Positions 9,403 to 36,740 of a stretch of 64,000 bases of DNA are shown here, piece by piece. Every line of letters starts with the position of its first letter. Within the stretch, counting starts at the first letter, position 1. Under the pieces are notes generated by a model, which did not search any database, was not told the DNA's origin, and saw only the letters and a list, made by a program, of their open reading frames with translations. Made by a program: the position numbers and the translations under genes. The stretch is taken from positions 186,001 through 250,000 of the IMG/VR virus record IMGVR_UViG_3300036715_004471; one strand, written 5' to 3'.

Positions 9403-9422
9403 TTGTTTTGGTATATATCAGC

Positions 9423-9797
9423 TTATTTTTCTCCGGGTAATTTAGGCTCAAATGGTCCTTTAATAGTATCTGTAATTTGTAATGTCTTTTCTAAATCATC
9501 AACCAATTTTTCAGCCCATGAAACTAAAGTTTTATCAATTTTCGATATATCCACGTTTTCTACATCATAATAAGCAACTAAAGTAGCAGCAATTTTCCAT
9601 AAATCTTTATGAACATTTTCACTCATCTCTTGAAATGAATATTGTGCTTGTTCTTTCTTATTTGTAAAAGGCGTTAAATTGCGTTTTTCATCTATAGCTG
9701 ATTCTACAGCTTTTGCTAATTTATTCATACCTTGTTCTTTAGCTTCATCAGCTTGTAATTTTATTTTATTATATACGGAGTTTTTTAATATAATCAT
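9423..9797 (-). CDS. Small helical hypothetical protein (124 aa)
   Basis: ATGA overlap with the spike gene stop; charged and helical. Confidence 0.6.
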   Translation of the reverse strand: MIILKNSVYNKIKLQADEAKEQGMNKLAKAVESAIDEKRNLTPFTNKKEQAQYSFQEMSENVHKDLWKIAATLVAYYDVENVDISKIDKTLVSWAEKLVDDLEKTLQITDTIKGPFEPKLPGEK

Positions 9798-11806: not shown

Positions 11807-11810
11807 AGTA

Positions 11811-16730: not shown

Positions 16731-16732
16731 TG

Positions 16733-17584: not shown

Positions 17585-17586
17585 AT

Positions 17587-19746: not shown

Positions 19747-19749
19747 TTA

Positions 19750-20112
19750 TTATCCTTGTTTCACTGGACGGCGCTTCTTTCTTTTTACCTGCTTAATGTC
19801 CTTTTGTTTTTCTAATTGTTCGTTGATTTCTTTAACCATTCTGGTAGATTCTTCAAACTCTTCATCAGTAGAAGTATGAACATTACCATCTCCCAATAAC
19901 TGCTTAACAGCTTCTGGATTCCAGAATGATGCTAATAGATATGCGTGATTTTTAGCTAGTTCAGCCTGTTCATTCTGATCTGCTAACCAGTTTTCATACA
20001 TCCACATTTTTTGAACCGGATCCATATCTACTATTCTAGGATCATCTGGGGTAGTCTTAAAAATCTCTTTACACAAATACCATGCAAAGCGATGATCCGA
20101 TTCATGTATTAT
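19750..20112 (-). CDS. Tail assembly chaperone, downstream -1 frame part (lambda gpT-like)
   Basis: The -1 frame is open from the A7 slippery site (IIHESDHRFAWYLCKEIF...); the track's TTG start at 20076 has no obvious RBS. Confidence 0.7.
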   Translation of the reverse strand: MIHESDHRFAWYLCKEIFKTTPDDPRIVDMDPVQKMWMYENWLADQNEQAELAKNHAYLLASFWNPEAVKQLLGDGNVHTSTDEEFEESTRMVKEINEQLEKQKDIKQVKRKKRRPVKQG

Positions 20113-20777
20113 TTTTTTAAGTCGTCAATTATCTCCCTTGCTTCCATTTCATTTCTTATGGAATACTTGTTTCTAGCTACTTCTGCCATCTTCAAATATT
20201 CATCATACAATCTATTAAGCAAAGGCTCATGTAATTCATCAATAAATGATAATTTCATTTCTAGATCATCTGAACCAACAAATTGAGAGAAATTAACACC
20301 CGCAATTTCCACTAAAGAACGAGCTAAAAATTGTCTTCTAACTTCAAAAGGAGACTGTACAGTTCCATCGAATTCAGAGGCTGCCATAATGGCTTCTCTC
20401 ATTGACTTGCCTGGCAAAGTTTGTAAAACAAAGACATTTCCATCAATATTTACATCATGCGTAGTGCGAGTCATATTAAGAAGCATTTCAAGTCTTCTTT
20501 TAGCACCCTCATTTAATTTTTCTTTTCCAGAAATTTTAGCTTTTCTAGCCTCTCTAAATTCTCTTTCAAGTTCAGCAGGATCTCTTTCTGATTCTTGCAT
20601 TCTATGTTGAAAATTTTGAATATCCGTATCATCCAAAGGCGGTAATGCCGCTCTTCTTCTAACTATCGGATTTACCACATTTTCAGGTGTTAATCCACTT
20701 TCATCTGGAATATCAATTTCTCTCATTCCAGAACCACCAAACTTCTTATTTCCTAAAGGGCTATCAAAACCAGGCAT
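20109..20777 (-). CDS. Tail assembly chaperone (lambda gpG-like); start revised to ATG 20777
   Basis: Lies between tube and tape measure genes; GGAG RBS; ends TTA AAA AAA TAA. Confidence 0.7.
   Translation of the reverse strand: MPGFDSPLGNKKFGGSGMREIDIPDESGLTPENVVNPIVRRRAALPPLDDTDIQNFQHRMQESERDPAELEREFREARKAKISGKEKLNEGAKRRLEMLLNMTRTTHDVNIDGNVFVLQTLPGKSMREAIMAASEFDGTVQSPFEVRRQFLARSLVEIAGVNFSQFVGSDDLEMKLSFIDELHEPLLNRLYDEYLKMAEVARNKYSIRNEMEAREIIDDLKK
20112..20118 (-). other. Programmed -1 ribosomal frameshift slippery site A AAA AAA
   Basis: X XXY YYZ heptamer in the last codons of the chaperone gene; SD-like AGGGAG (20133-20138) 14 nt upstream. Confidence 0.7.
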
Positions 20778-20789
20778 TATAAACTCCAC

Positions 20790-20836
20790 AAAAAAAACTA
20801 TCCTATAACTGAATATATCAATTACAGGATAGTTTT
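20790..20836 (-). terminator. Intrinsic terminator after the sheath and tube genes
   Basis: Arms AAAACTATCCT / AGGATAGTTTT (extendable with G-U pairs), ending in a run of 8 T on the minus strand. Confidence 0.75.
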
Positions 20837-20865
20837 AGCTAACTAGGGATTTATGATAGCTTATA

Positions 20866-21564
20866 TTAGAACAAGTTGCCTGATGAACCGATATCAATCA
20901 AACCAGAAGCGTCAAGAGATCCTCTTCTGCCGTTAGAACCAGTATCAGTAAGTTGTTCGATGTTAACAATACCATCGCCGCTGGTGATATTAAGAATTCC
21001 GTTTGGACCTGCGCCCATGTGTAGAATTCCTCTTTCTCCACCAACTGCGGCAGGAACGCCTCCTGGAATTGGAGAAGAGCCGCCATTAAGTATACTGAAG
21101 ATATTTTCAGCTTCCCACTGCATAGAATCAGTAATGATCCAATCATTAGCCTGATAAGTGTAATCTAAACCAGAAATCCAAACATTCTTAATAACAGTGG
21201 ATATTTGACTGCCTTGATCTCTTTTTTGTTTATCTAGAATGACAATATCAAACGGATAAACTTGTGAGGCGGCATGTAAAAATCCCCTGCTAAATGCTTC
21301 GGTTATCCTTAATCTATCAAATCTAATTCTTTGGCAAGTTCCAGTAATGTTAGTGGAACTTATTGGTGCAGAATCAATATGACCGTCAGTTCCAACTTCA
21401 TCAACCATTTTGATTTGTCTCTTTTCAGAGATAGCCATAGATTGAATTGCCCCAACAGCAGTATTGTTGACCAAAATGATTATATTTGTTGATAAGGCTG
21501 TACTGGTCTTATTAACACCATTCGGTAGTGTTAACGTAGAACTAGTATTTGGTGCTGTAGCCAT
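20866..21564 (-). CDS. Tail tube protein
   Basis: Directly follows the sheath; tube-like pattern (VGAIQSMAISEKRQIKMVDEVG...ITGTCQRIRF...PFDIVILD...TVIKNVWISGLDYTY). Confidence 0.8.
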   Translation of the reverse strand: MATAPNTSSTLTLPNGVNKTSTALSTNIIILVNNTAVGAIQSMAISEKRQIKMVDEVGTDGHIDSAPISSTNITGTCQRIRFDRLRITEAFSRGFLHAASQVYPFDIVILDKQKRDQGSQISTVIKNVWISGLDYTYQANDWIITDSMQWEAENIFSILNGGSSPIPGGVPAAVGGERGILHMGAGPNGILNITSGDGIVNIEQLTDTGSNGRRGSLDASGLIDIGSSGNLF

Positions 21565-21578: not shown

Positions 21579-24341
21579 TTATATTTGTCCGACACTTACT
21601 TTGATGTAAATGAAGTTGACTGGATAGCTTGGTTGTACTCTTACAGAAATATTCCATTGTGTTGGATCTACATCATCTTGTACTACGCTTAGATCGGCGT
21701 AGTTAGTGATTAATCCTTGAGAAACCAAAGAGTTTAACAAGATAACTGCGCGAGTATTCAATACTGCTCCAGTGTTTTTATCTTGTGGTAAACCAATGTA
21801 ACCAGCAAAACCAGCTCTTAATGTCTTGGCAACTCTGTCTCTAATGAATACAATAGAGATTTCTTGTTCTTCAACAAAACCACTTTGAGAAGTGGTCAAT
21901 CCCCAGATTACTCTACCTCCACCAGCGACTGGTTGTAAGGTACAAACTCCAGCTGCTGCCAATTGTTCAAGTGTTGCTGTAGAAAGTGTCTTGTTTCTTA
22001 GAATTGTGAATCCAGATAACACTTTATTGGTTAAAGGATTTTGGATTTGCACATCTGCTGATTCATATCCGGCGGCGGCGGCTGCAAGATAGAATCCGTC
22101 AATTAAGACATTATCTGCACCGGCTTGTACCACAATTTGATCAGGATAGAAATACACACATCTATATGTATTGCCGAAAGCATTTGATACTGAATAGTTG
22201 GCAAGATCTTCTACGTTTCCAGCTAACACATCAGTAATAGTTTCTCCTTGAATTCCTTCTAGAGTACCTATGTCTTCAACTGCGGCAGGTTTAGTTCCAA
22301 TTAAGTTTTCAGGCAATAATCCATTGATTGCCCCAATAAACAATACTCTTTCTTTCTTGTTACGAATATTGCTCATGGATTTGCAATGTGATAATGCATT
22401 CTGAAAAATAACAGAGATAGTTTGTTTTGGTAGTGGCACCAAAATGTCACATTCTACTACTTCTAGAGAGGCTAGAGCATTAATCCATCCAGCATCATAG
22501 AAAGATGCTTCTTTTTCATCAACTATAGTAACTCTTAATCCATATCCCATTGGGACTACGTTATGATTAATGACTATATAGTTACTAACACTTGATGAAT
22601 CCAATACTTCATATCTTACACCAATTTCATTAACAAGTGTTTTGCTAATTGTAATAGTATTTGTTAAGCTATCATATCCGGTAATATCATACAAACCGTT
22701 GTTATCTGCTGATCCATTAATTTGTAATCTACGAGTAAGTATACTGGTAATTGTACTAAAATCTACCGCTGAAGAATTCAAAGTTGCCGTGGCTGTACCT
22801 ATTAAATTAACCAAAGTTCCATCAACACCAGAGCCACCGCTAATTGGAAGTCCAGTAGAAATATCAATTACTTCAAAAGTAACTGAAGACTCCGTGACGA
22901 AATCAGGGAATGTTTCATGAGTTACATACAATTGCCCATTACTTACGGCGTCAATAGTATAAGTACCAATATTGGCAACATTTACAGCATCAATAACTTT
23001 TAAGGTTTTTCCAACATGATAAGAATCAAATATAATAGATGCTCCGAACACACCTTTATCAAGGAAGGCGGGATTTCTACCAACATATCCATCTTCTCCG
23101 GTTGCCATAATTGCCAAACTTTCTTTGACAGTATAGAAATATGAGAAACCTGCTGGGGCTGAAGTATCATCAAAAATGAATTGATCAGTGGTTGGATTAC
23201 CAGATGTATCCAAAGTATAAAAATCCAATTTATTAGGAAGAATCTGATTTTCTACATTGGTAGAATTATTCTTAACAAAGAAATGGATATTAGAATCAAA
23301 ATCTGGAGTTACACCTAATGGTAGCGGGAAAATAAAATCATCCCCATTCAACGAAGCAGCATTTACTGCTTCTTCCAAAATGTAAGAACGTCTTGTTGGC
23401 ATTGGAGGAGCAGCTTGAACTGTAATCAAAGTTGGAGCATTATTAGCATAAGCTAATTGGGCGCCCAAAGCCAAATTATTAGTCAAACTTGGGAAACCAT
23501 GTCTGGTAACTACATCTCCCATACCTTGAGTTAAAACAGGATCATTCAAGAAAGTAGATGGAATGTAATTTGCAGTTAAAGAATCACTTCTAACTAATAC
23601 TCCGCTACTAATTTTAACAGTGAATGCGTCGCCCTCTCTAAATGGAGAGGTAACTACAGACATAACTTGAGTTTCTGAAATAGAGAATCTTAATATGCCG
23701 TTACTAACAAGTTGGTCATTAGCAACCCAAATAATTGGATTACCATTTGCATCAAGTTTAGATCCAGAAATAGAACCAATAGCTAAGAACTTAGCAGTTC
23801 CAGCAATTGGTTGATTCAAAACGTTTCTTTGAACAGATACGCATCTAATAGTCCAAATCTCTGGTGGAGCATTTGAGTCAACCAAAGATAAGTTATTGAC
23901 TGTTCCCAAACCAACGTTAGTAGATAGTGGAATATAAAAAGCGCCTCCCTGATCTACAAGGTGTGCTTTTTGTAATTCAACTTTTCCAGAAGAAATATCA
24001 ATTCTATAATCATAGTTATTGCTAAATGGGTTAGAATCAATAAGAGATTCTAAACCAACTAGTGGAATACCATTTTTGAAAATTCTTGTTCTGTTAGAAA
24101 TTAATGGGAAGTTTGATAGTTGAAAATGTCTACCGTCAGCGCCAGATGTAGATGAGTAGGAAGAATTCAAACCATCGCTACCACCACCATTTGCTTGTGA
24201 TACGAGCGTTTCATCAGTTGAACCTTCACCTATCATAGCGGCAACACGTGATCCTCCAGGAATTGACGTTCCACGTGATTGAGTAATTACGTCAGTTGTT
24301 ACTCCTGGTATTAAACCAGCTCCCCCAGGTTGATTTGCCAT
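21579..24341 (-). CDS. Contractile tail sheath protein with inserted domains
   Basis: Sheath C-terminus (EQLAAAGVCTLQPVAGGGRVIWGLTT...EISIVFIRDRVAKTLR...DPTQWNISVRVQPSYPVNFIYIKV); RBS AGAGGAG. Confidence 0.9.
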   Translation of the reverse strand: MANQPGGAGLIPGVTTDVITQSRGTSIPGGSRVAAMIGEGSTDETLVSQANGGGSDGLNSSYSSTSGADGRHFQLSNFPLISNRTRIFKNGIPLVGLESLIDSNPFSNNYDYRIDISSGKVELQKAHLVDQGGAFYIPLSTNVGLGTVNNLSLVDSNAPPEIWTIRCVSVQRNVLNQPIAGTAKFLAIGSISGSKLDANGNPIIWVANDQLVSNGILRFSISETQVMSVVTSPFREGDAFTVKISSGVLVRSDSLTANYIPSTFLNDPVLTQGMGDVVTRHGFPSLTNNLALGAQLAYANNAPTLITVQAAPPMPTRRSYILEEAVNAASLNGDDFIFPLPLGVTPDFDSNIHFFVKNNSTNVENQILPNKLDFYTLDTSGNPTTDQFIFDDTSAPAGFSYFYTVKESLAIMATGEDGYVGRNPAFLDKGVFGASIIFDSYHVGKTLKVIDAVNVANIGTYTIDAVSNGQLYVTHETFPDFVTESSVTFEVIDISTGLPISGGSGVDGTLVNLIGTATATLNSSAVDFSTITSILTRRLQINGSADNNGLYDITGYDSLTNTITISKTLVNEIGVRYEVLDSSSVSNYIVINHNVVPMGYGLRVTIVDEKEASFYDAGWINALASLEVVECDILVPLPKQTISVIFQNALSHCKSMSNIRNKKERVLFIGAINGLLPENLIGTKPAAVEDIGTLEGIQGETITDVLAGNVEDLANYSVSNAFGNTYRCVYFYPDQIVVQAGADNVLIDGFYLAAAAAGYESADVQIQNPLTNKVLSGFTILRNKTLSTATLEQLAAAGVCTLQPVAGGGRVIWGLTTSQSGFVEEQEISIVFIRDRVAKTLRAGFAGYIGLPQDKNTGAVLNTRAVILLNSLVSQGLITNYADLSVVQDDVDPTQWNISVRVQPSYPVNFIYIKVSVGQI

Positions 24342-24532
24342 TATTTTTCTCCTCTAAAGATTTCTTCTATTGCTTTCGTAGAGCGATTCAACATAATCGA
24401 AGTCCTATACATTTTTGTAGATTGTATCATTAAAATGTATTAATATTCCTATCAAAGCGGATATATTAGTGAGTTTTGTCTATTTATCAAGGCAACAAAA
24501 TTTATAGATTTGTACCACATAAATCATTTGAT

Positions 24533-25360
24533 TTATAATTCTAGCAATAAATCTGTGATGCTGACTGAGGTATTGATAGTCAAATTAGCAGCAGGAGGAC
24601 TATTGGGATTTGATAAATTAGCAAAATTTATGGTAAATAAAATGGTATCAACCACACTGTCAACTGGTATTTCTCTACGCCATTCCGTTCTTATATCTAA
24701 TGTTAAAGTTTGCCTAAATAACTTATCATTTCTATCATCTGTTTCAGAAGGGGCGCTAATATTTATTGGTTTAACTATAACTCCAACATCAACTAAAGTA
24801 TCAAAATTGATTTCAGTAAAACACATAGCTATTAATTCAGATAGATCATCTCTTGATCTTAAACTTCTAGTCATAACATCAATTATTATCGATCCTTCCC
24901 ATGCTCCTGCTGTAATGAAATATTTTGGTTTATGAATTACTTTTTGATTCCCATAGCCATCTTCAAATATCATGCTTTCATATTGAATACCGCTTTGATC
25001 TCTATTAATAGAAATAGGTACATATCTACTGCCACCACTTTTAACCAAAATAGCAGGATAATAAATACCATCATATCTATAGTTTTCTCCAATAAACACA
25101 CGAGTACTAAGATTTAGAGTATTATTTAGAGAAGGTTGCGCACCAAATCCAGAAGGCAAATTTGCCCCAGGTGGAAGATCAGTATGATCAGTTGTATTAG
25201 CAAACCCCCACTGATCTTTAGAATAATGGTAATAACTATCTTTAGAAAAAAAATCTTTCAAAGTAGAGATTATTATTTCTTTTGGATAAACAAGCATTGA
25301 AGCCTGTATGATATTATGTAGTGGAAACAAATCACTTTTGAAAAAATTACCAGAACTCAT
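24533..25360 (-). CDS. Tail completion/terminator-like protein
   Basis: Precedes the sheath; YPAILVKSGG...WEGSIIIDVMTRSLRSRDDLSELI fits the tail-terminator pattern. Confidence 0.55.
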   Translation of the reverse strand: MSSGNFFKSDLFPLHNIIQASMLVYPKEIIISTLKDFFSKDSYYHYSKDQWGFANTTDHTDLPPGANLPSGFGAQPSLNNTLNLSTRVFIGENYRYDGIYYPAILVKSGGSRYVPISINRDQSGIQYESMIFEDGYGNQKVIHKPKYFITAGAWEGSIIIDVMTRSLRSRDDLSELIAMCFTEINFDTLVDVGVIVKPINISAPSETDDRNDKLFRQTLTLDIRTEWRREIPVDSVVDTILFTINFANLSNPNSPPAANLTINTSVSITDLLLEL

Positions 25361-25371
25361 AAATTACTGCC

Positions 25372-28300
25372 TTACCAACGATACTTAATAGTTATAGGAG
25401 ATAATGAAACTGTAATAGTAGAAACTGCATCTTCTTGTGATGTAATAATATATAAACCTACATCATGCGTACCAGTATTTATAAAATTGTTGAAAGGAGA
25501 AATAACATTTGGAGAAGTAGAGTCTGAAATTTCCAATGTATATGGTCCAACAGAAGTTGTAAAATCACCAGATGGAGATTGGTTTAAAATTAAATTAGTT
25601 GTTGAGTTTGATTTATATAATACAGATTGAACGAATCCTGTTGTCGCAAATACACGATCTGATGCTATTGTGAAAGTTACGTATGTAACAAAAGTATTAA
25701 TTGGAAGTATCGATGATAATGGCAAATTCCATTCATAATTTATTCTTCCAGAAACTGTTGGTCCTATGTATTTTGATTTCACACTATCAAGATCGCCCGG
25801 TCCTGTAGAATTAACAGAAATAGAAAATCCGGCGGGAGTATCTCCAGCAATGACTCTGGATGAGCCAGCTAAACTAAATCTTTGTGACCCTTGATTAGAA
25901 CACAAATATAAAGTATTAGTTTGATTTATGTTTCTTTCTACAATCCATCTTGTCGTATTAACTGATGTGTTTGTTAAGTTAACTAATAATTCATTATTGT
26001 CTACTTCATTAGTATATGGACTATCAAAAAAATTCTCAGTAACTATTCCGTTTGATCCCGCGCCATCCCACAATGTTGAATCATAATTTTCAAAAGCAAT
26101 GTACGCAAAAATACTCTTAGTGTTTCTATAAATTTTATTGTGTGTTACAATATTATCATTTCCACCCAATAAAATTAATTTTCCTTGATTAAAGGTTTCA
26201 GAAACACCCTTTAAAATATTATTATGTATATTACATGATGATTGAGAATAAATATATCCCAAACTATAATTGTAACTAATAGGAGATGAAGAGAAATACT
26301 TCCAATAACCTGTATTAGTTGTATTGTTACTAATTATACAAGAAGAATTATTTCCTTCTCCAGGATTTTGAGAGTTAGAAGCCGTATGTTTGTTAGATCC
26401 AATAAATATAGCATAGTTGGCAAAAATAGCCGACGTATCTATTCCAAAATTAGATAAATAGTTAATATCATATGAAGAAAGAGTATTGTTTATAATCTTC
26501 AAAGAACTGTTATCTTCATATGAAATGCCTGAAAAAATCCAATTGATAGTATTGTTGTTAATAGAAACATGACCAGTAGCATAACTTACACTATTAGTAC
26601 TAACACCAAGTACCAATTTATCAAGTAAGAAATGTTTTCCCTTACTATCTACATTAACAATAAGATGACAGTTATTACTGTTAATATTTAAACCGAATTC
26701 TCTTTCAGTTAATTGATTGACATTAGGATCCACATTTGTATACTTAGCTCCTGATGATACCCAATATCCAATACTTCCGCAAATATTTTTTTCAATATGA
26801 CAGTTTTGACATGATATACCTGGATATACCATATTACTATTTGAATCAAATTTTGAAGTTATAATGATTGATTGATTTCTATTACAAATGTTATTTGTAA
26901 TATTGGCATTTAATAATATTGGTTGTTGATTTTTTGTAGTATTAAACAGTGAAAAAGGAGTAGTGTTTATAATAGATATAGCTGCCCTATAATCATCTGT
27001 TGAAGGACCTACAATAGACAAATTGTTAAACTTACAATTTGTAATATTAACATTTTTCAATATAGCTGAATTATATGATAACTCAAAATTTATGAAACTA
27101 TATCTGTTATTTGTATTAGATGATGGATTATAGTTAAAAACTACATTATTTATATCAATATCACTTAGTAATCCGCTTATATTTGAATATATATATCCTT
27201 GACCACTATTAACCAAATTAGAAGAATCATATGCAATTCCATTATAAGAATCTGCACTTGGATTATATGTTGATGTTACATTAGAATTATACAATTTTAT
27301 ATTGCTAGATGTAGAGATATCTAAACATTTATTAAAATTACCAGAGAGGCTGGAATCTATTATTGTAATATAGTTGCTGTTAGTTAATGTAAATACATTT
27401 CCTGGTGTTATTGTGCCTGGCACAATAACATAATTTGTAACTATATTGGTATTGTCTAGTTTAAAATTACTAGAATTGTTTAACTTAAATACTGATCCTC
27501 TAAATACAAAACCACTTCCAAAAGCAGAAGTATATTGAGCAGTTATATTGCAATTTCTTATTGTAATATTTGTGCCCCCACTTATATTAAAAATGATGTT
27601 GCTAGCAGGAGATGAAGCTGGAACATTAATTGTGATGTCGCAATTTTCTATTAAAATATTTTGACAATTTGAATTGAAAAATACATAGTCATTAAAAATG
27701 ATATCACAGTTTTTTATATTTACATTTGAGCCAAACGTAACTATATTATTAAATGTTAATAATGCATCTTTTTCACCATCAATAATAACGGTATTAGCAA
27801 AATCTAATGTAGTTGGCGAACTAATAGTTCCACTAGTTCCATTAGCACCTTTTACAATTGCTAAGCTATTAAATTGATTGTTATATTTGATCCAATTAAA
27901 TATTGACTCTATATTTTTGAAATTTCCTTGTGCTTCTGCAGAAGTTAATTTCAATGGCAAATTACTATCTGCATCATTAACATATTTTCTAACATCTGTT
28001 AATGATAAAGAGATTGTTGCGGGCACTACAAGTGTTGAAACAGTAGATGATACAATGTAAAGAGGTGTTAAATCTTTTCTCTTATTAACAACATTTGAAA
28101 AAGTAGTAGCATCTAAATTATAGTTTAATCCATTAGCAGCATTAAATGCTTTAAATAATCTTGTAGAATCATCAGGCGTGCCTAATGAACTATCAAAATC
28201 TAATAATGGTATTGGTTGATATTCTCCCTTATCATTTGCACATAACAACCAATTCACATCATGCAAAAAACCAAAATTTTCTTTAATTATAGGAATATTA

Positions 28301-31257
28301 ACTGTTTCATTATTTAATGGAATTATTTTTCCATTAACTAATACAACTCCGCCATTCAAATAAATTTGATCATTATTAGGATTAGTTATTGTATCTTTAT
28401 CTTGGAGATCGAATCCTCTAATAACACCATTAGTATGTAATAATTTTTCTGGCAGAGATATGAAATTTAAAGCCGATGTACTTAAATCTTTTTCACTTAT
28501 ATTTCCAAATTGTCTCTCATCTTTTATGAAATTAACTGTGTTATTTGTATCATTAAGTTGACACGTGCCAATTAACATTATTTCTTCATCTAATGAAAGG
28601 GTAGGAAATAATTGAAAATCAATAAATTGATTACTAAAATCAGACACAACAGTGTTTATGTCAAAAATAACATCAATGAAATCTATATTTGTTTCATCAT
28701 AAAATCTGGTTACTTGACCTTTTTTACCAGTAGTTATTGGTCCATTATGAGATAAGGTAATGCCATCATATGAAGCTAAGTTTCCAACATATGTTCCTGT
28801 AGCATCATTGTAACTTATCATATTTAAGGTTATTTTATTTACTGATCCAAATTGATAACCTCTTAATTTAGAAGATATTTTTACTATGTTTAATTTGATT
28901 AGTTCTGAAAATGTTAATAATGGTATACCGTTTATAGTAGTAGAAGAGCCCGCTCCAATCCTACCTCTTTCATGTGTAAATGTATGTCCATTTTGGTCTA
29001 TATAAACTTCGAAAAATCTTTTGAATGGAGATACATTAGTGAAATCTGTGGCACTTTCTTTATTAAATGACACGGAGTCTGAATTAAAATAAAGTGCTAC
29101 TTTACCACCAATTGCTAATGTTGGAGATGGAGATATACCAGTTGCATGTACAGCATCGTATACAGTAATATCTGTATACGCATCTGCTGGAGTTGGACAT
29201 GGATTAAGGAACGTTATATTTTCTATTATAAATCTGCCGTAATCTACCAAGTTGCCTTCGCCCGCTGATTGAACAACTACTGTCTTTCCTGCTTTTAAAT
29301 TAGAAGTAGATAAATCTAATAATACGCGATAAGTAACTTGTACTCTTCCACTAGGTCCAGGAAATATATTTACATTATGAACTGTGGCGTCCCAATAACC
29401 ATCACCATAAGTATCTAATAATTGATTTACTTCTAAAGTTAATTTTTCTTTTTCAATACCATTAACATAATAATTATTTCTTTTTAGTGGTAAAAAGATT
29501 TTAGTTGGAAGTAATGCTGCTTCCGCTGATCCATAAGAACTTTGGTATGGAGGGCTAGCATAATTAGATCCATTAGTCCCAAAACCCAATGCGTCTATAG
29601 CAGAAGTGCCGGCATCAGGAAAAACATCAACAACATTTTTTTGAAAATTAACGCTAGTTTCTACTTCATCATATGTTCCATCAGAAGCAACAATGCCGCT
29701 TAAAATGGAAAATCCTGAATTTCCATAAGAATCAGCCAACATAATTCCAAATTCACCTTGATATGAGAAGGCGATAAATCTATAATTGTAACCAACTTTT
29801 CTAAATGAATTATTAGTTGCTTCTACTACTGATTCTAAAGTGTATTGTCCTGGAGTTGTTCCTCTATTTCCAGTTACATCAATTGCTGGTAAAATCGTAT
29901 AACCATCCGCAGGAGATCCAGTTGGATATAAAGCAAGATATAAGAAATAATGTGTTCCATTTAATTGATCTGGATTAAATCCTATTCCTAATGCTTGTGC
30001 ACCACGTGGATTTCCAACTATTAAACTAGGAACTTCGGAAAAAGTATTATTAGCAGGAGCTACTGCCAATACACCATATTTATTATTATTGAATAATGGT
30101 TTATCTATTCTAGCTACTGCATTAACAGAATAAAATAAATTTTTACCATTTATTCGAACAATATATTTTTTATTACCACCACTTTGTATATACTTTTTTT
30201 CTTTGATAATAAATTGTACTTCAACAGATCCATAATTAATTCTAAGTACATCTCCTATTTTGACTAATGCAAATTTTTCATCAAATGAATTAGAGCTTAT
30301 ATCACCTGCTGATGGTTTAAACTCTATAATGTCATCTCCAAAATTAATATCATCAAAAGGCGAGCTATTAATGCCAGTATTTAAAAGATATGCGATAACA
30401 GGTGTGTTTGGAATAACTGGAGCGCCATATCCATCATTAATTAGACTTGTAGATCTTGATGATCTGGAAATACCATTGGAATACAAATTTTGCATTCTTG
30501 TACCAAGTAAAAATATACTGGAACTATCAATAAAATCCGCAAACTTCTGTAAATCAACAGCTGTTTGAGGTATGACGGCGAATCTACTTGTATTTAACCA
30601 AATTCCACTAGAAGTATGTCCATAATTAGAAGGATAAGTAGATCCATCTATTGTAGTAATCAATTGTACATTATTTTCAACTGAACCATCTGCAAGCTGA
30701 TGGTGCAAAAATTCATTATTAATGTCATTGATTAAAGTATAAGAATCATGATTGTCTCTTAAAGCATTGAATTTGTTTTTTAAATATTGATTTGGATCAT
30801 TGCTTACATCTATTTGATTTAAAGTGTGTCTATAGATGGCTCCCAAAAGATGTGGCTCTAACTTTATTCCTGTTAGTGAAATCCATCCGAAACTGGTATT
30901 TATACTATTAGATAAATCTTGAATGTAATTGAATAGATCTTGAGTTCTGTGATCTAATTTCAATTTAGATTCTGGTATTTCGGCAGAATTAGAAATTTGA
31001 TCGTTAGTGATTGGTAAGGTAACTAATCCTAAACTAGCAATGGCAGAAGGTTTAACTGTGCCATCAGGCTCTAATGAGATACCTAATCTTTCAGAAATAG
31101 AACCTGTAGTACCAGCGCCACCTAAACCCAAGTACTGTTCTACATTGAACATTGCATCACGCAATGCATTAATAGCTTCAGCCCCCAAATCCTGAATATT
31201 ATCATTGATTGGAGGTAAAGTTGTATCATCATCAAAATCGTTTGGGAAATTACTCAT
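25372..31257 (-). CDS. Large tail fibre/appendage protein with a right-handed beta-helix region (1961 aa)
   Basis: Fibre-type N-terminus (MSNFPNDFDDDTTLP...AINALRDAMFNVEQYLG); Asn/Ile-rich parallel beta-helix repeats (NITIRNCNI, NVNITNCKF, SCIISNNTT). Confidence 0.65.
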   Translation of the reverse strand: MSNFPNDFDDDTTLPPINDNIQDLGAEAINALRDAMFNVEQYLGLGGAGTTGSISERLGISLEPDGTVKPSAIASLGLVTLPITNDQISNSAEIPESKLKLDHRTQDLFNYIQDLSNSINTSFGWISLTGIKLEPHLLGAIYRHTLNQIDVSNDPNQYLKNKFNALRDNHDSYTLINDINNEFLHHQLADGSVENNVQLITTIDGSTYPSNYGHTSSGIWLNTSRFAVIPQTAVDLQKFADFIDSSSIFLLGTRMQNLYSNGISRSSRSTSLINDGYGAPVIPNTPVIAYLLNTGINSSPFDDINFGDDIIEFKPSAGDISSNSFDEKFALVKIGDVLRINYGSVEVQFIIKEKKYIQSGGNKKYIVRINGKNLFYSVNAVARIDKPLFNNNKYGVLAVAPANNTFSEVPSLIVGNPRGAQALGIGFNPDQLNGTHYFLYLALYPTGSPADGYTILPAIDVTGNRGTTPGQYTLESVVEATNNSFRKVGYNYRFIAFSYQGEFGIMLADSYGNSGFSILSGIVASDGTYDEVETSVNFQKNVVDVFPDAGTSAIDALGFGTNGSNYASPPYQSSYGSAEAALLPTKIFLPLKRNNYYVNGIEKEKLTLEVNQLLDTYGDGYWDATVHNVNIFPGPSGRVQVTYRVLLDLSTSNLKAGKTVVVQSAGEGNLVDYGRFIIENITFLNPCPTPADAYTDITVYDAVHATGISPSPTLAIGGKVALYFNSDSVSFNKESATDFTNVSPFKRFFEVYIDQNGHTFTHERGRIGAGSSTTINGIPLLTFSELIKLNIVKISSKLRGYQFGSVNKITLNMISYNDATGTYVGNLASYDGITLSHNGPITTGKKGQVTRFYDETNIDFIDVIFDINTVVSDFSNQFIDFQLFPTLSLDEEIMLIGTCQLNDTNNTVNFIKDERQFGNISEKDLSTSALNFISLPEKLLHTNGVIRGFDLQDKDTITNPNNDQIYLNGGVVLVNGKIIPLNNETVNIPIIKENFGFLHDVNWLLCANDKGEYQPIPLLDFDSSLGTPDDSTRLFKAFNAANGLNYNLDATTFSNVVNKRKDLTPLYIVSSTVSTLVVPATISLSLTDVRKYVNDADSNLPLKLTSAEAQGNFKNIESIFNWIKYNNQFNSLAIVKGANGTSGTISSPTTLDFANTVIIDGEKDALLTFNNIVTFGSNVNIKNCDIIFNDYVFFNSNCQNILIENCDITINVPASSPASNIIFNISGGTNITIRNCNITAQYTSAFGSGFVFRGSVFKLNNSSNFKLDNTNIVTNYVIVPGTITPGNVFTLTNSNYITIIDSSLSGNFNKCLDISTSSNIKLYNSNVTSTYNPSADSYNGIAYDSSNLVNSGQGYIYSNISGLLSDIDINNVVFNYNPSSNTNNRYSFINFELSYNSAILKNVNITNCKFNNLSIVGPSTDDYRAAISIINTTPFSLFNTTKNQQPILLNANITNNICNRNQSIIITSKFDSNSNMVYPGISCQNCHIEKNICGSIGYWVSSGAKYTNVDPNVNQLTEREFGLNINSNNCHLIVNVDSKGKHFLLDKLVLGVSTNSVSYATGHVSINNNTINWIFSGISYEDNSSLKIINNTLSSYDINYLSNFGIDTSAIFANYAIFIGSNKHTASNSQNPGEGNNSSCIISNNTTNTGYWKYFSSSPISYNYSLGYIYSQSSCNIHNNILKGVSETFNQGKLILLGGNDNIVTHNKIYRNTKSIFAYIAFENYDSTLWDGAGSNGIVTENFFDSPYTNEVDNNELLVNLTNTSVNTTRWIVERNINQTNTLYLCSNQGSQRFSLAGSSRVIAGDTPAGFSISVNSTGPGDLDSVKSKYIGPTVSGRINYEWNLPLSSILPINTFVTYVTFTIASDRVFATTGFVQSVLYKSNSTTNLILNQSPSGDFTTSVGPYTLEISDSTSPNVISPFNNFINTGTHDVGLYIITSQEDAVSTITVSLSPITIKYRW

Positions 31258-31284
31258 TTTATCACCGTATAAATATAACTTAAC

Positions 31285-31704
31285 TTATTCTTTATTGATT
31301 GATTCGCCAACGCGTTTAATTAAAGCGTCTGCGGTTGGATCTTCAACAGGAATAGTTCCTGGAGGCAAAGAGGCAACTAATTTTTGATTGAAAAGAGCTT
31401 TTACTATTCTATACAATAAAGTTGATAATAAACCAGCTACCAAACCAAATACAAATCTACCACCGGTTGCAGAGATACCTTCTGGATAAGGATATCCTTT
31501 GATGAAAACTGTAGAAACAGAACCTAAAACTACTGGCATAATTGGTAATATCAAATCATTCCATAATTTAGATTCTTTAGCCATAACTTTGACATTAGTT
31601 AATATGTATTCAACAACAGTTCTTAATACAGACGTTATTGCCACAATACCCAAACTAAAAATTATAAACTGCCAGCTCATTAATACTTGTAATATATTAT
31701 CCAT
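31285..31704 (-). CDS. Holin-like membrane protein
   Basis: 139 aa with three hydrophobic segments and a charged C-terminus; AGGAG RBS. No endolysin is visible in the window. Confidence 0.5.
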   Translation of the reverse strand: MDNILQVLMSWQFIIFSLGIVAITSVLRTVVEYILTNVKVMAKESKLWNDLILPIMPVVLGSVSTVFIKGYPYPEGISATGGRFVFGLVAGLLSTLLYRIVKALFNQKLVASLPPGTIPVEDPTADALIKRVGESINKE

Positions 31705-31741
31705 GATAATCTCCTGTACTAGATACTAATTAAGTAATATA

Positions 31742-33064
31742 TTAAGCGGCAACTATAGTCAATTTTATTATCACTGTCCATTTGATATTAGAAGCAGCTG
31801 AAGACCCAGTATATATATTCAAATTATTTCCAGCAATTGTAATATCTGGTGCTACCCAAGAAGATGCTGCGGCAGTATTTCTAGGATCAGTGCTTGTTAA
31901 AACGCCACCAATTATTTTAGGAGCGCTAGCAGTATCTCTTAAATATCCTACACTGTAATTATATTGCGCCGCCGCATCAGTTCCAACAATTTTTCCGATA
32001 TATTCCACATCTACTTTAGTTGCAGTATTATCTACCAAAAGATAACTTAAAGCCAATGCCGGATTTGGCGCAATAGATGTTGTAACAACTCTTAAAGAAT
32101 AAACTTGTCCAGATGAATTCCCCCATATATTTGGGTTCAATGAAGATCCTATTACAAAGTTATCTCCATCAGATTGTTTAATCCAAAGCTGACCCTTTTG
32201 AGAATATAAAATCGTTCCATTAACAGGAATACCAGTTACAGGTGGAACTTCAGTATCTCTTATATACATTACCATATCACCAGTATCAGCTGGCATGTCA
32301 GATGAAGTTAATGATACCGGATTTAATATTGACAATACTTTTTGTCCAGATGGTAAATTAGCTAATTGCAACATTTCAGTCGTATCACCAATTTGTAATG
32401 ATATTCCACCTAATTTACCACTTCCATCTTTATCTCCTCCTCTCAAAATAAGATTACCACCATTACCATCAGTAAATGTAGATGACTGAGCGGCAACAGT
32501 AAAATTACCAGCATTTGATGTTGTATTTGAATCTTGTGTAATTATGGGAATTGCTGATTCTATAAAATTAATAGAATCACAAGATGCTCTTAACACGCCA
32601 GCAACACCAGTAATGCCTATTACATTTTGAGATACATTATTACCATTTAAATCTCCAGAAGGATTAAAAATATTAACTGGTGGAGAAGGAGTCCATACAG
32701 TACCGTCCCATGTTAATACATCACCAGTAACTGGAATCGAGGCGCTAATAGATTTGCCTTGTATTTTTTTAACACTGATATTGGTAGCAATACCATCAAT
32801 ATCACCAGATATTTGAATTAAACCTTTATTAGATGTTGTTGCATCAGGTATTTCAGGAGCGGCAGTAATGATATTTAATTGTTCAATTGCATTTTGCAAA
32901 TTTGATACTACTACATTATTGGATAATTCAATAGGATTAGTCAGATCTATTTGCTCTGCTTTATGTCTAAAATTATAACCATCAATATGATTTTGAAAAT
33001 GAAATCTGTCAGTTACTAATCTACCAACATCTGTTTTATAATTCGGGACTAATGGTGTGGTCAT
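31742..33064 (-). CDS. Fibre-like virion protein (440 aa)
   Basis: Fibre-type segments (KIQGKSISASIPVTGDVLTWDGTVWTP; Gly-rich GNGGNLILRGG) and a beta-rich C-terminal domain. Confidence 0.55.
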   Translation of the reverse strand: MTTPLVPNYKTDVGRLVTDRFHFQNHIDGYNFRHKAEQIDLTNPIELSNNVVVSNLQNAIEQLNIITAAPEIPDATTSNKGLIQISGDIDGIATNISVKKIQGKSISASIPVTGDVLTWDGTVWTPSPPVNIFNPSGDLNGNNVSQNVIGITGVAGVLRASCDSINFIESAIPIITQDSNTTSNAGNFTVAAQSSTFTDGNGGNLILRGGDKDGSGKLGGISLQIGDTTEMLQLANLPSGQKVLSILNPVSLTSSDMPADTGDMVMYIRDTEVPPVTGIPVNGTILYSQKGQLWIKQSDGDNFVIGSSLNPNIWGNSSGQVYSLRVVTTSIAPNPALALSYLLVDNTATKVDVEYIGKIVGTDAAAQYNYSVGYLRDTASAPKIIGGVLTSTDPRNTAAASSWVAPDITIAGNNLNIYTGSSAASNIKWTVIIKLTIVAA

Positions 33065-33099
33065 AGGTTTCCTTGTGTTTTATATATGTTTTTATTAAC

Positions 33100-34785
33100 T
33101 TAAGGAGGAAGAATTATTTGATGAGTATGACCTAATACTTCCATAACGTTTCCATTTATTATTGGATGGTTATGACCTTGATTTACAGCTGTTGTTTGAT
33201 TAATTTGTATAACAGAAGTTATCTTTTCATTTATAACAATTTCATGAACATGTGGCGGAATGCCCGGCACAAAACTAACAGTGGTTGACAATTTTGTTGG
33301 AAACATAGATGTATTTCTAAAAACTCTAATTTGATAAGCTGGATCAAATTTTCTAATTCTCATTACTCTGAATAATTGACCGCCCTGTTGACCCAAAATA
33401 GTATTATTTCTAGTCACAGAAATAACTTCATATCTAAACTCTTCATTATCATCAATATCAAATAGAATTATAACATCTCTAGTTTTGATAGTTGGTACGG
33501 TCAGCGTCCATAGATTTAATGGAAACTCTGATTCTAATCCTGCCTCATACATTTTTGTTTGCTCATCTGTAGGAGATGGACGAACCATAATTCTACCGTC
33601 TGATTGTCTTGGATTGAAATATTGTTCATAACCAAATACAAACTTGGTACCATAACATAGCGGACATCTATCATCAGGATATTCACTACTAGCCAAATAA
33701 CAAGAACATGTAATACCTGTTTGAACCCTTCTGATTAATACTGCCGGTCTACCAGTAACAGATAATTCAACTTCTTGTCTTTGATCGTTATGATCTTGTA
33801 AATTGAAACCTCTCAAAATATTGTAATTGCCATAACCGTCTATACATCCTATTTCTCCGCCAATATAACTTCCAACGCATGTTCCATTTAATAATTGTAC
33901 TGGATCTGTTCTATGGTATCCTGCAAAATCATACATAGGAAAACCTACGTTAGCAGCATCAGAAGCGCTAAGATCTGTAGATAATAAATCTTTAGTTACT
34001 TGATGATAACCATCAATCAAAGTATATGGATAATTAGGATATTCAAATCTAGATTGGCATACAAAAATTCTATCAAATTGAGAAGATTCATCAATAGTGA
34101 ATTCAATAACTGAAGGGTTCCAAACCGTAATACCATCAAACCCCGCCACGGTATGGGGTTTAGCCACAGAGTTGTTATAACCTCTTTGTGATAAATCTAT
34201 TAAAATCAAATTCATATTAGCAGGATCAATAGAAGAATATTGTATTAATTCTCCGCCGATTTTAATTATTCCAGTTTCTGAAAAACCAGTAACATCTAAT
34301 AATGGAATGATTAAGTCATCTGCAAGAATATCTTGTCTTAAAATACTAAAAGGATATATTCTAAGGTTATCATAAGCAATAGGAAGTTGATTTAGATCAA
34401 AAGCCAATGGATCGTATTCTACTGGTCTTACACTAAAAAAATATTCTTGACCCGGAACAAGATCAATGATATTTGCTTCTAAAGTTCCATCCATAGAAAC
34501 ATATTTAACACCTTCAATAAAGATATCTTCTTTAATGGTAGAATAATAAAGATGATATGCTATTTGATTAGTTTTAATTGTAGGATAAACCTGATACCAT
34601 TTTATGTTAATAGTGTAACCATCACCAAGGCTGTGAACATGGTCTAATCCGGCTCTGATTGGGTTTAAGTAATATGGCATATCATTATTCAGATTTATTA
34701 GCCTCAAAATTTCACAATATCTAAAGTCTCGACAAAAACTTGGGGCTATATTATAGGGGAAGTAGTTATTATCTGATTGTAGCAC
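33100..34785 (-). CDS. Neck/head-closure-like protein with extra domains; true start may be ATG 34680
   Basis: Core TGRPAVLIRRVQTGITCSCY...RCPLCYGT...TIKTRDVII...FRYEVISV resembles head-closure proteins; FN3-like N-terminal segment; C-terminal HxH repeats. Confidence 0.55.
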   Translation of the reverse strand: MLQSDNNYFPYNIAPSFCRDFRYCEILRLINLNNDMPYYLNPIRAGLDHVHSLGDGYTINIKWYQVYPTIKTNQIAYHLYYSTIKEDIFIEGVKYVSMDGTLEANIIDLVPGQEYFFSVRPVEYDPLAFDLNQLPIAYDNLRIYPFSILRQDILADDLIIPLLDVTGFSETGIIKIGGELIQYSSIDPANMNLILIDLSQRGYNNSVAKPHTVAGFDGITVWNPSVIEFTIDESSQFDRIFVCQSRFEYPNYPYTLIDGYHQVTKDLLSTDLSASDAANVGFPMYDFAGYHRTDPVQLLNGTCVGSYIGGEIGCIDGYGNYNILRGFNLQDHNDQRQEVELSVTGRPAVLIRRVQTGITCSCYLASSEYPDDRCPLCYGTKFVFGYEQYFNPRQSDGRIMVRPSPTDEQTKMYEAGLESEFPLNLWTLTVPTIKTRDVIILFDIDDNEEFRYEVISVTRNNTILGQQGGQLFRVMRIRKFDPAYQIRVFRNTSMFPTKLSTTVSFVPGIPPHVHEIVINEKITSVIQINQTTAVNQGHNHPIINGNVMEVLGHTHQIILPP

Positions 34786-34918
34786 CTCTTTTCATAAAAG
34801 ACTTTATCATACAACCAAACTGTGATAGATAATTAAGCATTTCAGAGATTATCACATGACTATAGAAGTAGTTTTAAGTTAAGAGCGAGGCTTGGTCTAT
34901 CCTTAGTAACCTAAGAAT

Positions 34919-35440
34919 TTATACCTTTGCCATTAAAGTTTCTTTTTTATCTTTCTTCTCTTTTTTGTCATCTATTTCGTGATGATCTAAAAGCTGATCA
35001 ACATATTCTTCGGCTTCTTGGTCTCCGAAATTATCAGCAATATATTGAACTTGATTTTGAAAACCTTCTTGCTCAAAAGGATTATCTAGATAACTTCCTT
35101 CATCTGAACTTTGTGTTGGTTTGGTGCCAGTTGTTTGTTGTAACCAATGAGTAATTTCATGTACACCGTAAGAGAAATCTTCAAAAAAGTCACCATCACA
35201 CAATAACTTATAATTGAAAACAATAACTCCATGATCAGTTTTGGCGGATACATCAAGATTTCCAAATCTCATAGGAATGAAATCTATTTCTTCTATTTCT
35301 ACACCATATTCTTTAAACATATCTTTAGTAGTATCATCTTGCTTTAAGAATTCTCTTAACTTTTTGATCATTCTATTTAGAGATTGATATGGTAATTTTT
35401 TAACTTGCGTTAATGATAGTTTTTTCTCTTTGGCAGGCAT
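34919..35440 (-). CDS. Zincin-like metallopeptidase (HExxH)
   Basis: VHEITHWLQQ followed by YLDNPFEQEG (candidate third ligand Glu). Confidence 0.65.
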   Translation of the reverse strand: MPAKEKKLSLTQVKKLPYQSLNRMIKKLREFLKQDDTTKDMFKEYGVEIEEIDFIPMRFGNLDVSAKTDHGVIVFNYKLLCDGDFFEDFSYGVHEITHWLQQTTGTKPTQSSDEGSYLDNPFEQEGFQNQVQYIADNFGDQEAEEYVDQLLDHHEIDDKKEKKDKKETLMAKV

Positions 35441-35505
35441 GTTTATATGACTAAATAGTCGTTGTGTGCCTATTAGATATGAAAATGTTTATACTGGAAG
35501 AATGC

Positions 35506-36405
35506 TTAAATTATTTGTCTTGCACGTAAATGTCTCAAACGTTTGAATGCTGGATTCATGCCACTTGTCATCCCAAATACGCCGAGACCGCGTGGAGCAG
35601 GGCGTAGACTCGCTTTAATCATTTTTAGTTTTTCCCAATAATGAGTTAAAAGAGTACTATATTGTGTATTCATCAATTCGCTAACAGTTGGTGGATTAAA
35701 ATTTAATCCATTATCAGTAAATTGAAATTCGCGTCCACGTTCAATCAATGCTTTGGAGGCTAAAGAATAAAGAGTAGCGCCTTCTACCAAGATTTCTCCA
35801 AATTGCTCCACAAAATAATCATCATCAAAAGTAAAGAAAGTAAAATAGGGTACTTGATTAAAATCCCACAAAGCAGTTGCTACGAAAGTTGTTAACATAT
35901 CTATAGAGAAAATATCACAGTCCACATAAACAACATTACCAAAAGAATCAGTTGCTTTTGCTTTTCCCGAACTATTTAATCTGTTTTTCAATGATTTAAT
36001 TAACTTATTGATATTTTTAGTGGCACATTGAGAATAATTAAAACCGGGGTCATCACCTAAATGAACATATCCATCAGTATTAATTCCTGGCATTTGAGTA
36101 TGTGCTACTACAAAAGAAAATGTAGTTTCTATTCTAAACCCATTAATGAAACCGGTCCACACATCATTAAAAACACCATAGGGTCCATTGATTGGAATAG
36201 TGTAAATGAAAGAGTATTTGCCAGGAGCTATTTTAGATACTCCCGCTGAAGTTGGTAATAAAGCAACTAGACCACTAGGCTGAATTATAGAAATTTGAGG
36301 AAAAGAATCTGTATCAACAGCATTTCCTGATGAGTCTTTGAATTGTACTGTTAAATTAACTTGGTCTGTAACATCAATTAATTCACCACGTGCCTTAATA
36401 GTCAT
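35506..36405 (-). CDS. Head-tail adaptor/neck protein with N-terminal Ig-like domain
   Basis: Ig-like start (VNLTVQFKDSSG...GKYSFIY); helical C-terminal half (ALIERGREFQFTDNGLNFNPP) resembles neck adaptors; synteny. Confidence 0.5.
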   Translation of the reverse strand: MTIKARGELIDVTDQVNLTVQFKDSSGNAVDTDSFPQISIIQPSGLVALLPTSAGVSKIAPGKYSFIYTIPINGPYGVFNDVWTGFINGFRIETTFSFVVAHTQMPGINTDGYVHLGDDPGFNYSQCATKNINKLIKSLKNRLNSSGKAKATDSFGNVVYVDCDIFSIDMLTTFVATALWDFNQVPYFTFFTFDDDYFVEQFGEILVEGATLYSLASKALIERGREFQFTDNGLNFNPPTVSELMNTQYSTLLTHYWEKLKMIKASLRPAPRGLGVFGMTSGMNPAFKRLRHLRARQII

Positions 36406-36407
36406 AA

Positions 36408-36740
36408 TTATCCTATTGTAGTGCTAAAGTTTCCAAACGGAGCACTTACTGTTATTTGATATCCACGAGTATTAAGAATATCCTGATAGTTAGTGAAAGA
36501 TACGTCGACTAAATAACTTCCTACGGAAATCGCTCCTGTAGGCAAATCAAACTGATAATAATACAAACCAGTATCTAATGGTATCATTGGTTGAGGATAC
36601 CCAGTAGCCAAGGTTAATCCTGGAAAAATAATTCTGTCTACAGTTGGTACAGTTGTACTATCTACACGAACACCATATCCGTCAGTTGTCTCTAGAAAAA
36701 TTGTTACTTTTTGCCCCGGAAAATAAGACAGTATTTGCAC
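36408..36740 (-). CDS. Small Ig-like virion protein (110 aa)
   Basis: GAGG RBS with GTG start; resembles the N-terminal domain of the next gene (TGLYYYQFDLP vs PGKYSFIYTIP). Confidence 0.55.
   Translation of the reverse strand: MQILSYFPGQKVTIFLETTDGYGVRVDSTTVPTVDRIIFPGLTLATGYPQPMIPLDTGLYYYQFDLPTGAISVGSYLVDVSFTNYQDILNTRGYQITVSAPFGNFSTTIG

Follow-up and report, generated by a model that had tools for sequence, protein, structure and literature searches.

Short protein motifs, and enzymes that decorate proteins, have been described in several prokaryotic and phage systems. In mycobacteriophages, phage-encoded glycosyltransferases decorate structural proteins of the virion in the cytoplasm, and the glycans are reported at the C-termini of the capsid and tail-tube subunits (Freeman et al. 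2023, cited in PMC12619734). In Gram-positive S-layer proteins, tyrosine itself is the acceptor (beta-Glc or beta-Gal to Tyr); the pathways include rhamnose-rich glycans and GT4-family enzymes, and transfer occurs en bloc by an oligosaccharyltransferase outside the membrane, at only a few sites per protein (PMC2943079). In Bacteroidota, the tripeptide D-(S/T)-(A/I/L/V/M/T) reportedly marks many unrelated surface proteins for periplasmic O-glycosylation without any wider context (Fletcher et al. 2009). EarP, a cytoplasmic GT-B enzyme using a dTDP-6-deoxy sugar, rhamnosylates a single Arg at the tip of a beta-hairpin of EF-P. The Asp-box of bacterial neuraminidases (S-x-D-x-G-x-T-W) is reportedly a purely structural Asp/Gly/aromatic beta-hairpin motif, widespread across life and found in unrelated folds (Copley et al. 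2001). Against this background, an Asp-Gly-Tyr (DGY) tripeptide was examined in a window of 64,000 nucleotides (positions 186,001 to 250,000 of the IMG/VR virus record IMGVR_UViG_3300036715_004471), in which the outer tail, neck and fibre proteins carry far more DGY than chance allows.

An earlier note on this window had counted 11 of 32 Asp-Gly dipeptides in the genes from the sheath to a 110-aa protein as being followed by Tyr, against 3 among about 80 elsewhere, and this observation is confirmed. Translation of the nine minus-strand ORFs at window positions 21579-36740 gives 32 DG and 11 DGY with exactly the per-gene counts listed in the note, the first and last DGY codons falling at 23085 and 36683. 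The rest of the window has 82 DG and 3 DGY, in ORFs of 724, 118 and 223 aa. As Tyr makes up 4.3% of these proteins, the binomial p is 4.7e-8, whereas the next most extreme tripeptide in the region has p = 5e-4. In a look-elsewhere scan over all 8000 tripeptides and all contiguous gene runs of the window, DGY in this exact run was the top signal, and none of 150 per-protein shuffles reached it (null minimum 9e-8). Further, the part of the two giant fibre ORFs that lies outside the window, just to its left, replicates the signal independently (9 DGY of 29 DG, p = 3e-6), while the rest of the 446.5-kb genome sits at composition (14 of 494).

The motif is distributed over seven of the nine genes. 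The 920-aa tail sheath (21579..24341, minus strand) matches phrog_2839 (E = 4e-12) and, weakly, Pfam Phage_sheath_1C and Phage_sheath_1, and has 1 DGY of 5 DG at residue 417 (nt 23085-23093), inside the large insertion ahead of the conserved C-terminal sheath domains; relatives carry further DGY in the same insertion. A 275-aa virion protein without an identified family (24533..25360, minus) has DGY at residue 134 (nt 24953-24961), a site that is DGY in 13 of 15 relatives. The 1961-aa fibre protein (25372..31257, minus) has DGY at residues 275, 451 and 619 (nt 30427-30435, 29899-29907 and 29395-29403), all in the conserved N-terminal third. These sites are DGY in 15-16 of 18 relatives, and relatives have extra DGY where this phage has DTY (16 of 18) or VGN (11 of 18). 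The 440-aa fibre-like protein (31742..33064, minus), with a weak DUF5907 repeat hit, carries the least conserved site at residue 28 (nt 32975-32983).

The 561-aa neck or stopper-like protein (33100..34785, minus) has a predicted N-terminal FN3-like domain and its true start is probably near Met36. DGY occurs at residues 55, 258 and 316 (nt 34615-34623, 34006-34014 and 33832-33840); residue 258 is DGY in 19 of 19 relatives, and DGI at residue 217 is DGY in most relatives. There are 714 homologues, most of about 525 aa, and across 120 homologues 457 of 908 DG are followed by Y. A structural model, although poor around two of the three sites, places D55-G56 in a loop between two strands, and Foldseek matches FN3 domains and neck/stopper proteins at weak E-values. 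A 299-aa virion protein (35506..36405, minus) has DGY at residue 111 (nt 36067-36075), conserved in 14 of 16 relatives. Lastly, the 110-aa small beta-rich protein (36408..36740, minus) has DGY at residue 20 (nt 36675-36683), in the loop after the first strand. In relatives this loop holds one to four DGY at shifting positions, with four in 17 residues in L014, the DGY-richest relative. The labels 'tail completion', 'adaptor' and 'Ig-like' used in the earlier note remain provisional, while 'sheath' and 'neck' have weak support. Pfam and PHROGs profile searches gave nothing for most DGY proteins.

At the left edge, window 3..971 (minus) encodes the N-terminal 323 aa of a 2369-aa fibre protein that continues outside the window (genome 179862-186971); the whole protein has 5 DGY of 13 DG, all outside the window. 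The baseplate and tail-core block at 973..21564 (minus), comprising a gp6-like wedge (phrog_6, E = 2e-36), a gp25-like sheath initiator (weak Sheath_initiator match) and ORFs of 555, 724, 681, 1667 and 719 aa, serves as an internal negative control and has 1 DGY of 39 DG. The major head protein (48204..49217, minus; phrog_2522, E = 1e-77), also a negative control, has 1 DG and no DGY, and the whole stretch from 36757 to the window end has 2 DGY of 43 DG.

The enrichment is specific to the complete tripeptide. In genome block 175859-222740, Y follows DG 21 times of 101, D precedes GY 21 times of 60, and G is the middle residue of D-x-Y 21 times of 51, with no extended consensus around the motif. 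In contrast, NGY is 2 of 103, DGF is 5 of 101 and DGW is 0, such that a general beta-turn effect, which the earlier note had named as a possible refutation, does not account for the signal. Nor is it seen in the fibres of three other phages: T4 fibres have 0 of 22, phage G 3 of 47 and the huge phage LR745208 3 of 67. The signal acts at the protein level, because the coding 9-mer occurs 21 times in frame and 0 times in the other sense frames, with ordinary codon choice.

The motif holds across a whole clade of roughly 400-490 kb freshwater phages. Nucleotide and protein searches of the phage collection found no close relative, the only hits being sheath matches at 25-29% identity, and the 'moraphage' paper describes a different, smaller lineage. 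However, all 20 loci around the neck gene are enriched, as is every relative checked, down to 41-43% identity. Over 52 loci around a glycosyltransferase gene discussed below, the fibre side has 554 of 1363 and the other side 21 of 587, and a distant full genome shows the same protein classes. Conservation of D, G and Y at the sites is 0.89, 0.86 and 0.74, against 0.62, 0.74 and 0.63 for the same residues elsewhere in these proteins. New copies also arise convergently: the L014 neck orthologue has 10 DGY of 14 DG where the orthologue from locus L012 has other residues, tandem arrays occur, and the motif slides within a loop. The extra opposite-strand genes in L014 are homing endonucleases and a 2H phosphoesterase, not modifying enzymes. 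Substitution patterns indicate that the hydroxyl of the Tyr matters, as Tyr to Phe accounts for 6 of 177 substitutions at the motif (3.4%) against 806 of 2352 (34%) for other Tyr; counted per site, the figures are 4 of 19 against 181 of 325 (p = 0.004). Secondary structure from two models puts the motifs between strands or in low-confidence loops, although these models gave no measure of solvent exposure.

The interpretation offered in the earlier note is partly supported. DGY as a selected linear motif in mostly unrelated proteins, and a Tyr suited to modification or docking, both hold, whereas the proposed writer/eraser link to a CX5R phosphatase is not supported. What the analysis establishes is a three-residue motif under protein-level selection in the outer tail-side proteins (fibres, neck protein, sheath insertion and small accessory proteins), in which all three residues are needed, sites are conserved and copies are gained convergently. 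That the motif is a recognition tag (sequon), that the Tyr is covalently modified by a phage-encoded enzyme in the infected cell before or during tail assembly, and which enzyme would do so, are inferences.

The most likely writer, on this tentative reading, is a GT4 glycosyltransferase at genome 174408-175544, which the earlier note could not see because it lies outside the window. The gene lies 314 nt downstream of the DGY-rich 1331-aa fibre gene and matches phrog_2170 (E = 1.5e-23) and Glyco_transf_4 (29 bits). Next to it is a dTDP-glucose-4,6-dehydratase-like (RmlB-like) gene (TIGR01181, E = 5e-101); a 321-aa ORF between the two matched nothing that identified it. The glycosyltransferase sits immediately after the fibre genes in all 51 related loci and the dehydratase is present in 36, while the three control phages have no homologue of the glycosyltransferase. 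In this view, the enzyme would O-glycosylate the Tyr and so coat fibres, neck and sheath with sugar, and the phosphatase would play no part. However, there is no direct evidence that any Tyr is modified, no GT4 enzyme is known to act on Tyr, and the enzyme could instead serve DNA or host-glycan modification. The association between gene and motif is perfect but phylogenetically non-independent, since no clade member lacking either was found. Further, non-virion proteins show no depletion of DGY (14 observed, 16.8 expected), and several sites lie in very conserved segments, which would also suit a structural or docking role. GT2, GT8, Sulfotransfer_3, NTP_transferase (RmlA) and dTDP-sugar isomerase (RmlC) families were searched for and are absent from the genome. 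A complex prediction of the glycosyltransferase with the 110-aa protein gave no answer, which is neither support nor evidence against. The broadest form of this reading, an undescribed cytoplasmic tyrosine-directed modification system whose dose lineages tune by gaining or losing tripeptides, is not excluded but remains doubtful.

Almost equally possible is that DGY is an unmodified motif, an Asp-Gly turn presenting a Tyr hydroxyl as a non-covalent docking or adhesion patch, for example in contacts among fibres, neck and sheath when fibres are stowed, in contacts with an assembly factor, or in weak binding to host surface glycans. DG is a classic two-residue hairpin turn, in the models D-G lies between strands, and hydrophobic residues often follow. 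Many sites are highly conserved and lie in the conserved proximal parts of fibres, the proteins carrying DGY are those exposed along the tail, and rare replacement of Tyr by Phe also fits an H-bonding role. However, a generic turn or sticky loop would demand neither Asp over Asn nor this strict order, and the enrichment is absent from the beta-rich baseplate and capsid proteins of the same phage as well as from the control phages. Further, tandem copies one or two residues apart, and three copies in a loop modelled as disordered, cannot each form a hairpin.

Reversible phosphorylation, as proposed in the earlier note, is very unlikely. The phosphatase-like gene is real (window 63281..64000, minus, cut by the window end; the full ORF runs to 64033), with an HCxxGxxR(T) loop and a Y_phosphatase3 match of 31.9 bits, above its cut-off. 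It is single-copy, on the same strand as the late genes, and conserved in 5 of 5 near-complete relatives; the importance of the Tyr hydroxyl would also fit. However, it lies 27 kb from the DGY genes and nothing ties it to DGY. Its other Pfam matches are to phosphatase domains of polymorphic-toxin and polyvalent 'Swiss Army Knife' phage proteins, which suggests a host-directed role. No convincing kinase was found in a search that did not include BY-kinase families, the only Pkinase hit being a 17.6-bit fragment, below the 31.7-bit cut-off, that covers only the catalytic-loop region of a 220-aa ORF at the contig end. Extracellular virions also have no obvious use for reversible phosphorylation.

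An artefact of chance, composition, a DNA-level motif or hidden common ancestry is largely refuted, even though the finding was post hoc, fibre proteins are mosaics and one distant fibre gains part of its 19 DGY from internal repeats, because the signal survives the scan statistic, is replicated outside the window and in more than 100 related loci, is strictly in frame, shows no relatedness among the 20 site contexts by BLAST or profile-profile comparison (best hhalign probability among 186 window pairs, 17%), and cannot stem from diversity-generating-retroelement mutagenesis, as Gly is GGA in 15 of 35 sites and the sites are conserved rather than hypervariable.

If DGY is a sequon, it would be the first tyrosine-directed glycosylation motif, or other tyrosine tag, described on a phage, and the first case where modification sites on virions can be read straight from sequence. 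A glycan coat could then be mapped across hundreds of uncultured huge phages, its effect on host recognition, stability or grazing could be asked, and the tripeptide would be a portable tag with biotechnological use. If unmodified, it is still a rare example of a clade-specific, convergently evolving three-residue element on unrelated structural proteins, which any model of how these giant tails assemble or stow their fibres would have to explain. Literature searches for such a motif found nothing relevant, the only hit being the eukaryotic DGpYMP peptide from IRS-1.

Set beside the described systems, the putative scheme shares with mycobacteriophage glycosylation a phage-encoded glycosyltransferase and structural virion proteins as targets, but the candidate sites are internal tripeptides on fibres, neck and sheath, the capsid proteins carry none, and modification here is inferred. 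The S-layer precedent shows that sugar-to-Tyr linkages exist in prokaryotes on self-assembling surface proteins, though its review gives no consensus motif and transfer there takes place outside the membrane. With EarP, the parallel is by analogy only and the acceptor there is a single Arg on one protein. The Bacteroidota motif likewise begins with Asp and marks many unrelated surface proteins, but its acceptor is Ser or Thr in the middle position, whereas in DGY the hydroxyl residue is Tyr in third position, Gly is obligatory and assembly is cytoplasmic. Compared with the longer Asp-box, DGY is clade-specific, restricted to outer virion proteins, forms tandem arrays in loops and depends on the Tyr hydroxyl.

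The window, positions 186001-250000 of a single 446,541-bp virus contig, belongs to a huge tailed phage, and almost all of its genes lie on the minus strand. These include a gp6-like baseplate wedge, a gp25-like sheath initiator, a tail sheath, a major head protein and, at the right edge, a protein-tyrosine-phosphatase-like gene. No close relative was found among deposited phage genomes. Metagenomes, however, hold hundreds of relatives on contigs of 400-490 kb, many of them from freshwater samples. Outside the window, about 110 kb of the same contig (genome 20,000-130,000) has 44-61% G+C against 31-38% for the rest, the ORFs called there look compositionally odd, and IMG/VR classes the record as a provirus. 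This segment may be a chimeric assembly or foreign DNA.

The count reported in the earlier note, that Tyr follows Asp-Gly unusually often in this gene run, is exact. The nine ORFs from 21579 to 36740 contain 32 Asp-Gly (DG), of which 11 are followed by Tyr (DGY), distributed gene by gene as the note described, whereas the rest of the window has 82 DG and 3 DGY. With a Tyr content of 4.3%, the binomial probability of this count is 4.7e-8, while the next most extreme tripeptide in the region reaches only 5e-4. As the finding was post hoc, every tripeptide was scanned over every contiguous run of genes in the window. DGY in this very run is the global optimum, and none of 150 per-protein shuffles matched it. 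Further, a clean replication comes from the two giant ORFs (1331 and 2369 aa) just left of the window, of which only the first 323 residues of one had been visible when the note was written. The unseen part has 9 DGY of 29 DG (p = 3e-6). Across the genome, the block 175859-222740 has 21 of 101, while the remaining 121,000 residues have 14 of 494, which is simply composition.

The enrichment is specific to the tripeptide. Within the block, D precedes GY 21 times of 60 and G is the middle residue of D-x-Y 21 times of 51, whereas NGY (2 of 103), DGF (5 of 101) and DGW (0) are not enriched. It is therefore not the general preference for a two-residue turn followed by an aromatic residue, and the beta-turn explanation that the note had set as a possible refutation does not hold. 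Control tail modules confirm this, with 0 of 22 in the T4 long fibres, 5 of 45 in the T4 gp53-gp24 block, 3 of 47 in phage G and 3 of 67 in a 485-kb uncultured phage (LR745208). Inside the same phage, the baseplate and tail-core block has 1 of 39 and the head-side part of the window 2 of 43. The signal is at protein level, as the coding 9-mer occurs 21 times in frame, never in the other sense frames and once antisense, and codon choice follows genome usage.

The motif is a property of the clade. All 20 loci recovered with the neck protein are enriched (p from 1e-4 to 1e-23), as are more distant ones down to 43% identity. Around the glycosyltransferase discussed below, 52 non-identical loci pool to 554 DGY of 1363 DG on the fibre side and 21 of 587 on the other side. 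A distant, nearly complete 435-kb genome has 105 DGY of 649 DG in the same protein classes, namely fibres, neck (5 of 6), sheath and small accessory proteins, while its baseplate and non-structural proteins have none. This relative also has an extra 1208-aa fibre (contig 203762-207388) with 19 DGY of 25 DG, a number reached partly through internal repeats. These comprise threefold repeats in which a '...DAATRNYV' segment runs straight into DGY, and other short repeat units that each begin with DGY.

The sites are constrained and are also gained anew. The D, G and Y of the motif are conserved at 0.89, 0.86 and 0.74, compared with 0.62, 0.74 and 0.63 for the same residues elsewhere in these proteins, and individual sites reach 19 of 19 or 43 of 48. 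Relatives carry DGY where this phage has DGI, DTY, DSY or VGN. One related lineage (L014) has 33 DGY of 68 DG, and its neck orthologue has 10 of 14, with DGY at positions where a sister sequence has HGS, DMS, VHG or NGM. In the small 110-aa protein, the loop after the first strand carries one to four copies at shifting positions, with four copies within 17 residues in L014. BLAST and 186 profile-profile comparisons of 93-residue windows around the 20 sites showed no relatedness (best probability 17%), and the motif has therefore not spread by domain shuffling.

The hydroxyl of the Tyr matters. When the motif's Tyr is substituted in orthologues it becomes Phe in 6 of 177 cases, while other Tyr residues of the same proteins become Phe in 806 of 2352 cases. 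Per site, the figures are 4 of 19 against 181 of 325 (p = 0.004). When the motif is lost, G and Y usually go together (DVD, DPA, DVP, DNS) while D often stays.

AlphaFold models of the 561-aa neck protein (window 33100-34785; mean pLDDT 61) and of its L014 orthologue (mean pLDDT 71) place D-G in loops between strands, with Y at or just before the next strand. Three of the L014 copies are predicted to lie in a 24-residue low-confidence loop. The N-terminus of the 561-aa protein is FN3-like and its C-terminal part resembles phage neck or stopper proteins, although at weak scores. Its annotated GTG start is probably about 35 codons too far upstream, since homologues begin near Met36. The C-terminus carries three His-x-His motifs, and upstream is a CxC...CPxC four-cysteine cluster that is invariant or nearly so in homologues. 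Both suggest metal sites like those of T4 fibre and spike proteins. Some homologues of the protein (P0019 and P0032) are interrupted by inteins with Hint and LAGLIDADG domains, and in L014 free-standing LAGLIDADG endonuclease genes (L014:6157-6987 and L014:8590-9429) are inserted on the opposite strand among the structural genes. A 2H phosphoesterase (L014:7977-8549), LigT-like and with a sub-threshold match to the anti-CBASS protein Acb1, also sits among the structural genes of this relative. In the window itself, a 139-aa ORF between the two fibre genes (31285-31704) gives a weak holin match (phrog_1129, E = 0.0015) and is conserved in 17 relatives.

Among the candidate enzymes is the CX5R phosphatase, which the earlier note had speculatively proposed as part of a writer/eraser system. 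The gene is real (HCxxGxxRT loop; Y_phosphatase3 at 31.9 bits), single-copy and conserved in five of five near-complete relatives. However, nothing ties it to DGY. It lies 27 kb away, and its other matches are to phosphatase domains of polymorphic toxins and polyvalent phage proteins. The only kinase-like hit is a 17.6-bit partial match at the contig end (genome 445903-446028), where a 220-aa ORF running to the end of the contig matches only the catalytic-loop region of protein kinase, Kdo and APH families, all at sub-threshold scores.

A different candidate lies at genome 174408-175544, 314 nt downstream of the DGY-rich 1331-aa fibre gene and on the same strand. It encodes a GT4-family glycosyltransferase (phrog_2170, E = 1.5e-23; Glyco_transf_4 just above its cut-off), and is followed by a 321-aa ORF that could not be placed in a family and a dTDP-glucose-4,6-dehydratase-like gene (TIGR01181, E = 5e-101). 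The glycosyltransferase follows the fibre genes in all 51 related loci, down to 41% identity, and the dehydratase is within 10 kb in 36 of them. Further, T4, phage G and LR745208, which lack the enrichment, have no homologue of the enzyme. One concern is that this association, while suggestive, is not independent, since no clade member lacks either trait. A tubulin/TubZ-like gene (genome 169005-170414) lies close to the cassette and is conserved in 32 of the 51 related loci. A second, stronger GT4/GT1 glycosyltransferase (58 bits; genome 316213-317385) is encoded far from the structural genes. The genome also has, at 319805-320836, a quinolinate synthase NadA gene (E = 2e-119), an auxiliary metabolic gene.

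Collectively, the analysis establishes a clade-wide, convergently maintained tripeptide on the outward-facing tail-side proteins, which depends on Asp, Gly and the Tyr hydroxyl. What the motif does is inferred. It is possible, though only tentatively proposed, that DGY is a sequon for modification of the Tyr, most plausibly O-glycosylation by the adjacent enzyme, and about as likely that it is an unmodified docking or adhesion patch. The interpretation offered in the earlier note is thus partly supported: a selected motif serving as a site for Tyr modification or docking remains in keeping with the data, whereas the phosphorylation scheme is unlikely. Chance, composition, DNA-level motifs, retroelement mutagenesis and hidden paralogy are effectively excluded. 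As regards known systems, Tyr-linked glycans occur on bacterial S-layers (PMC2943079), and virion glycosylation is known in mycobacteriophages (cited in PMC12619734).
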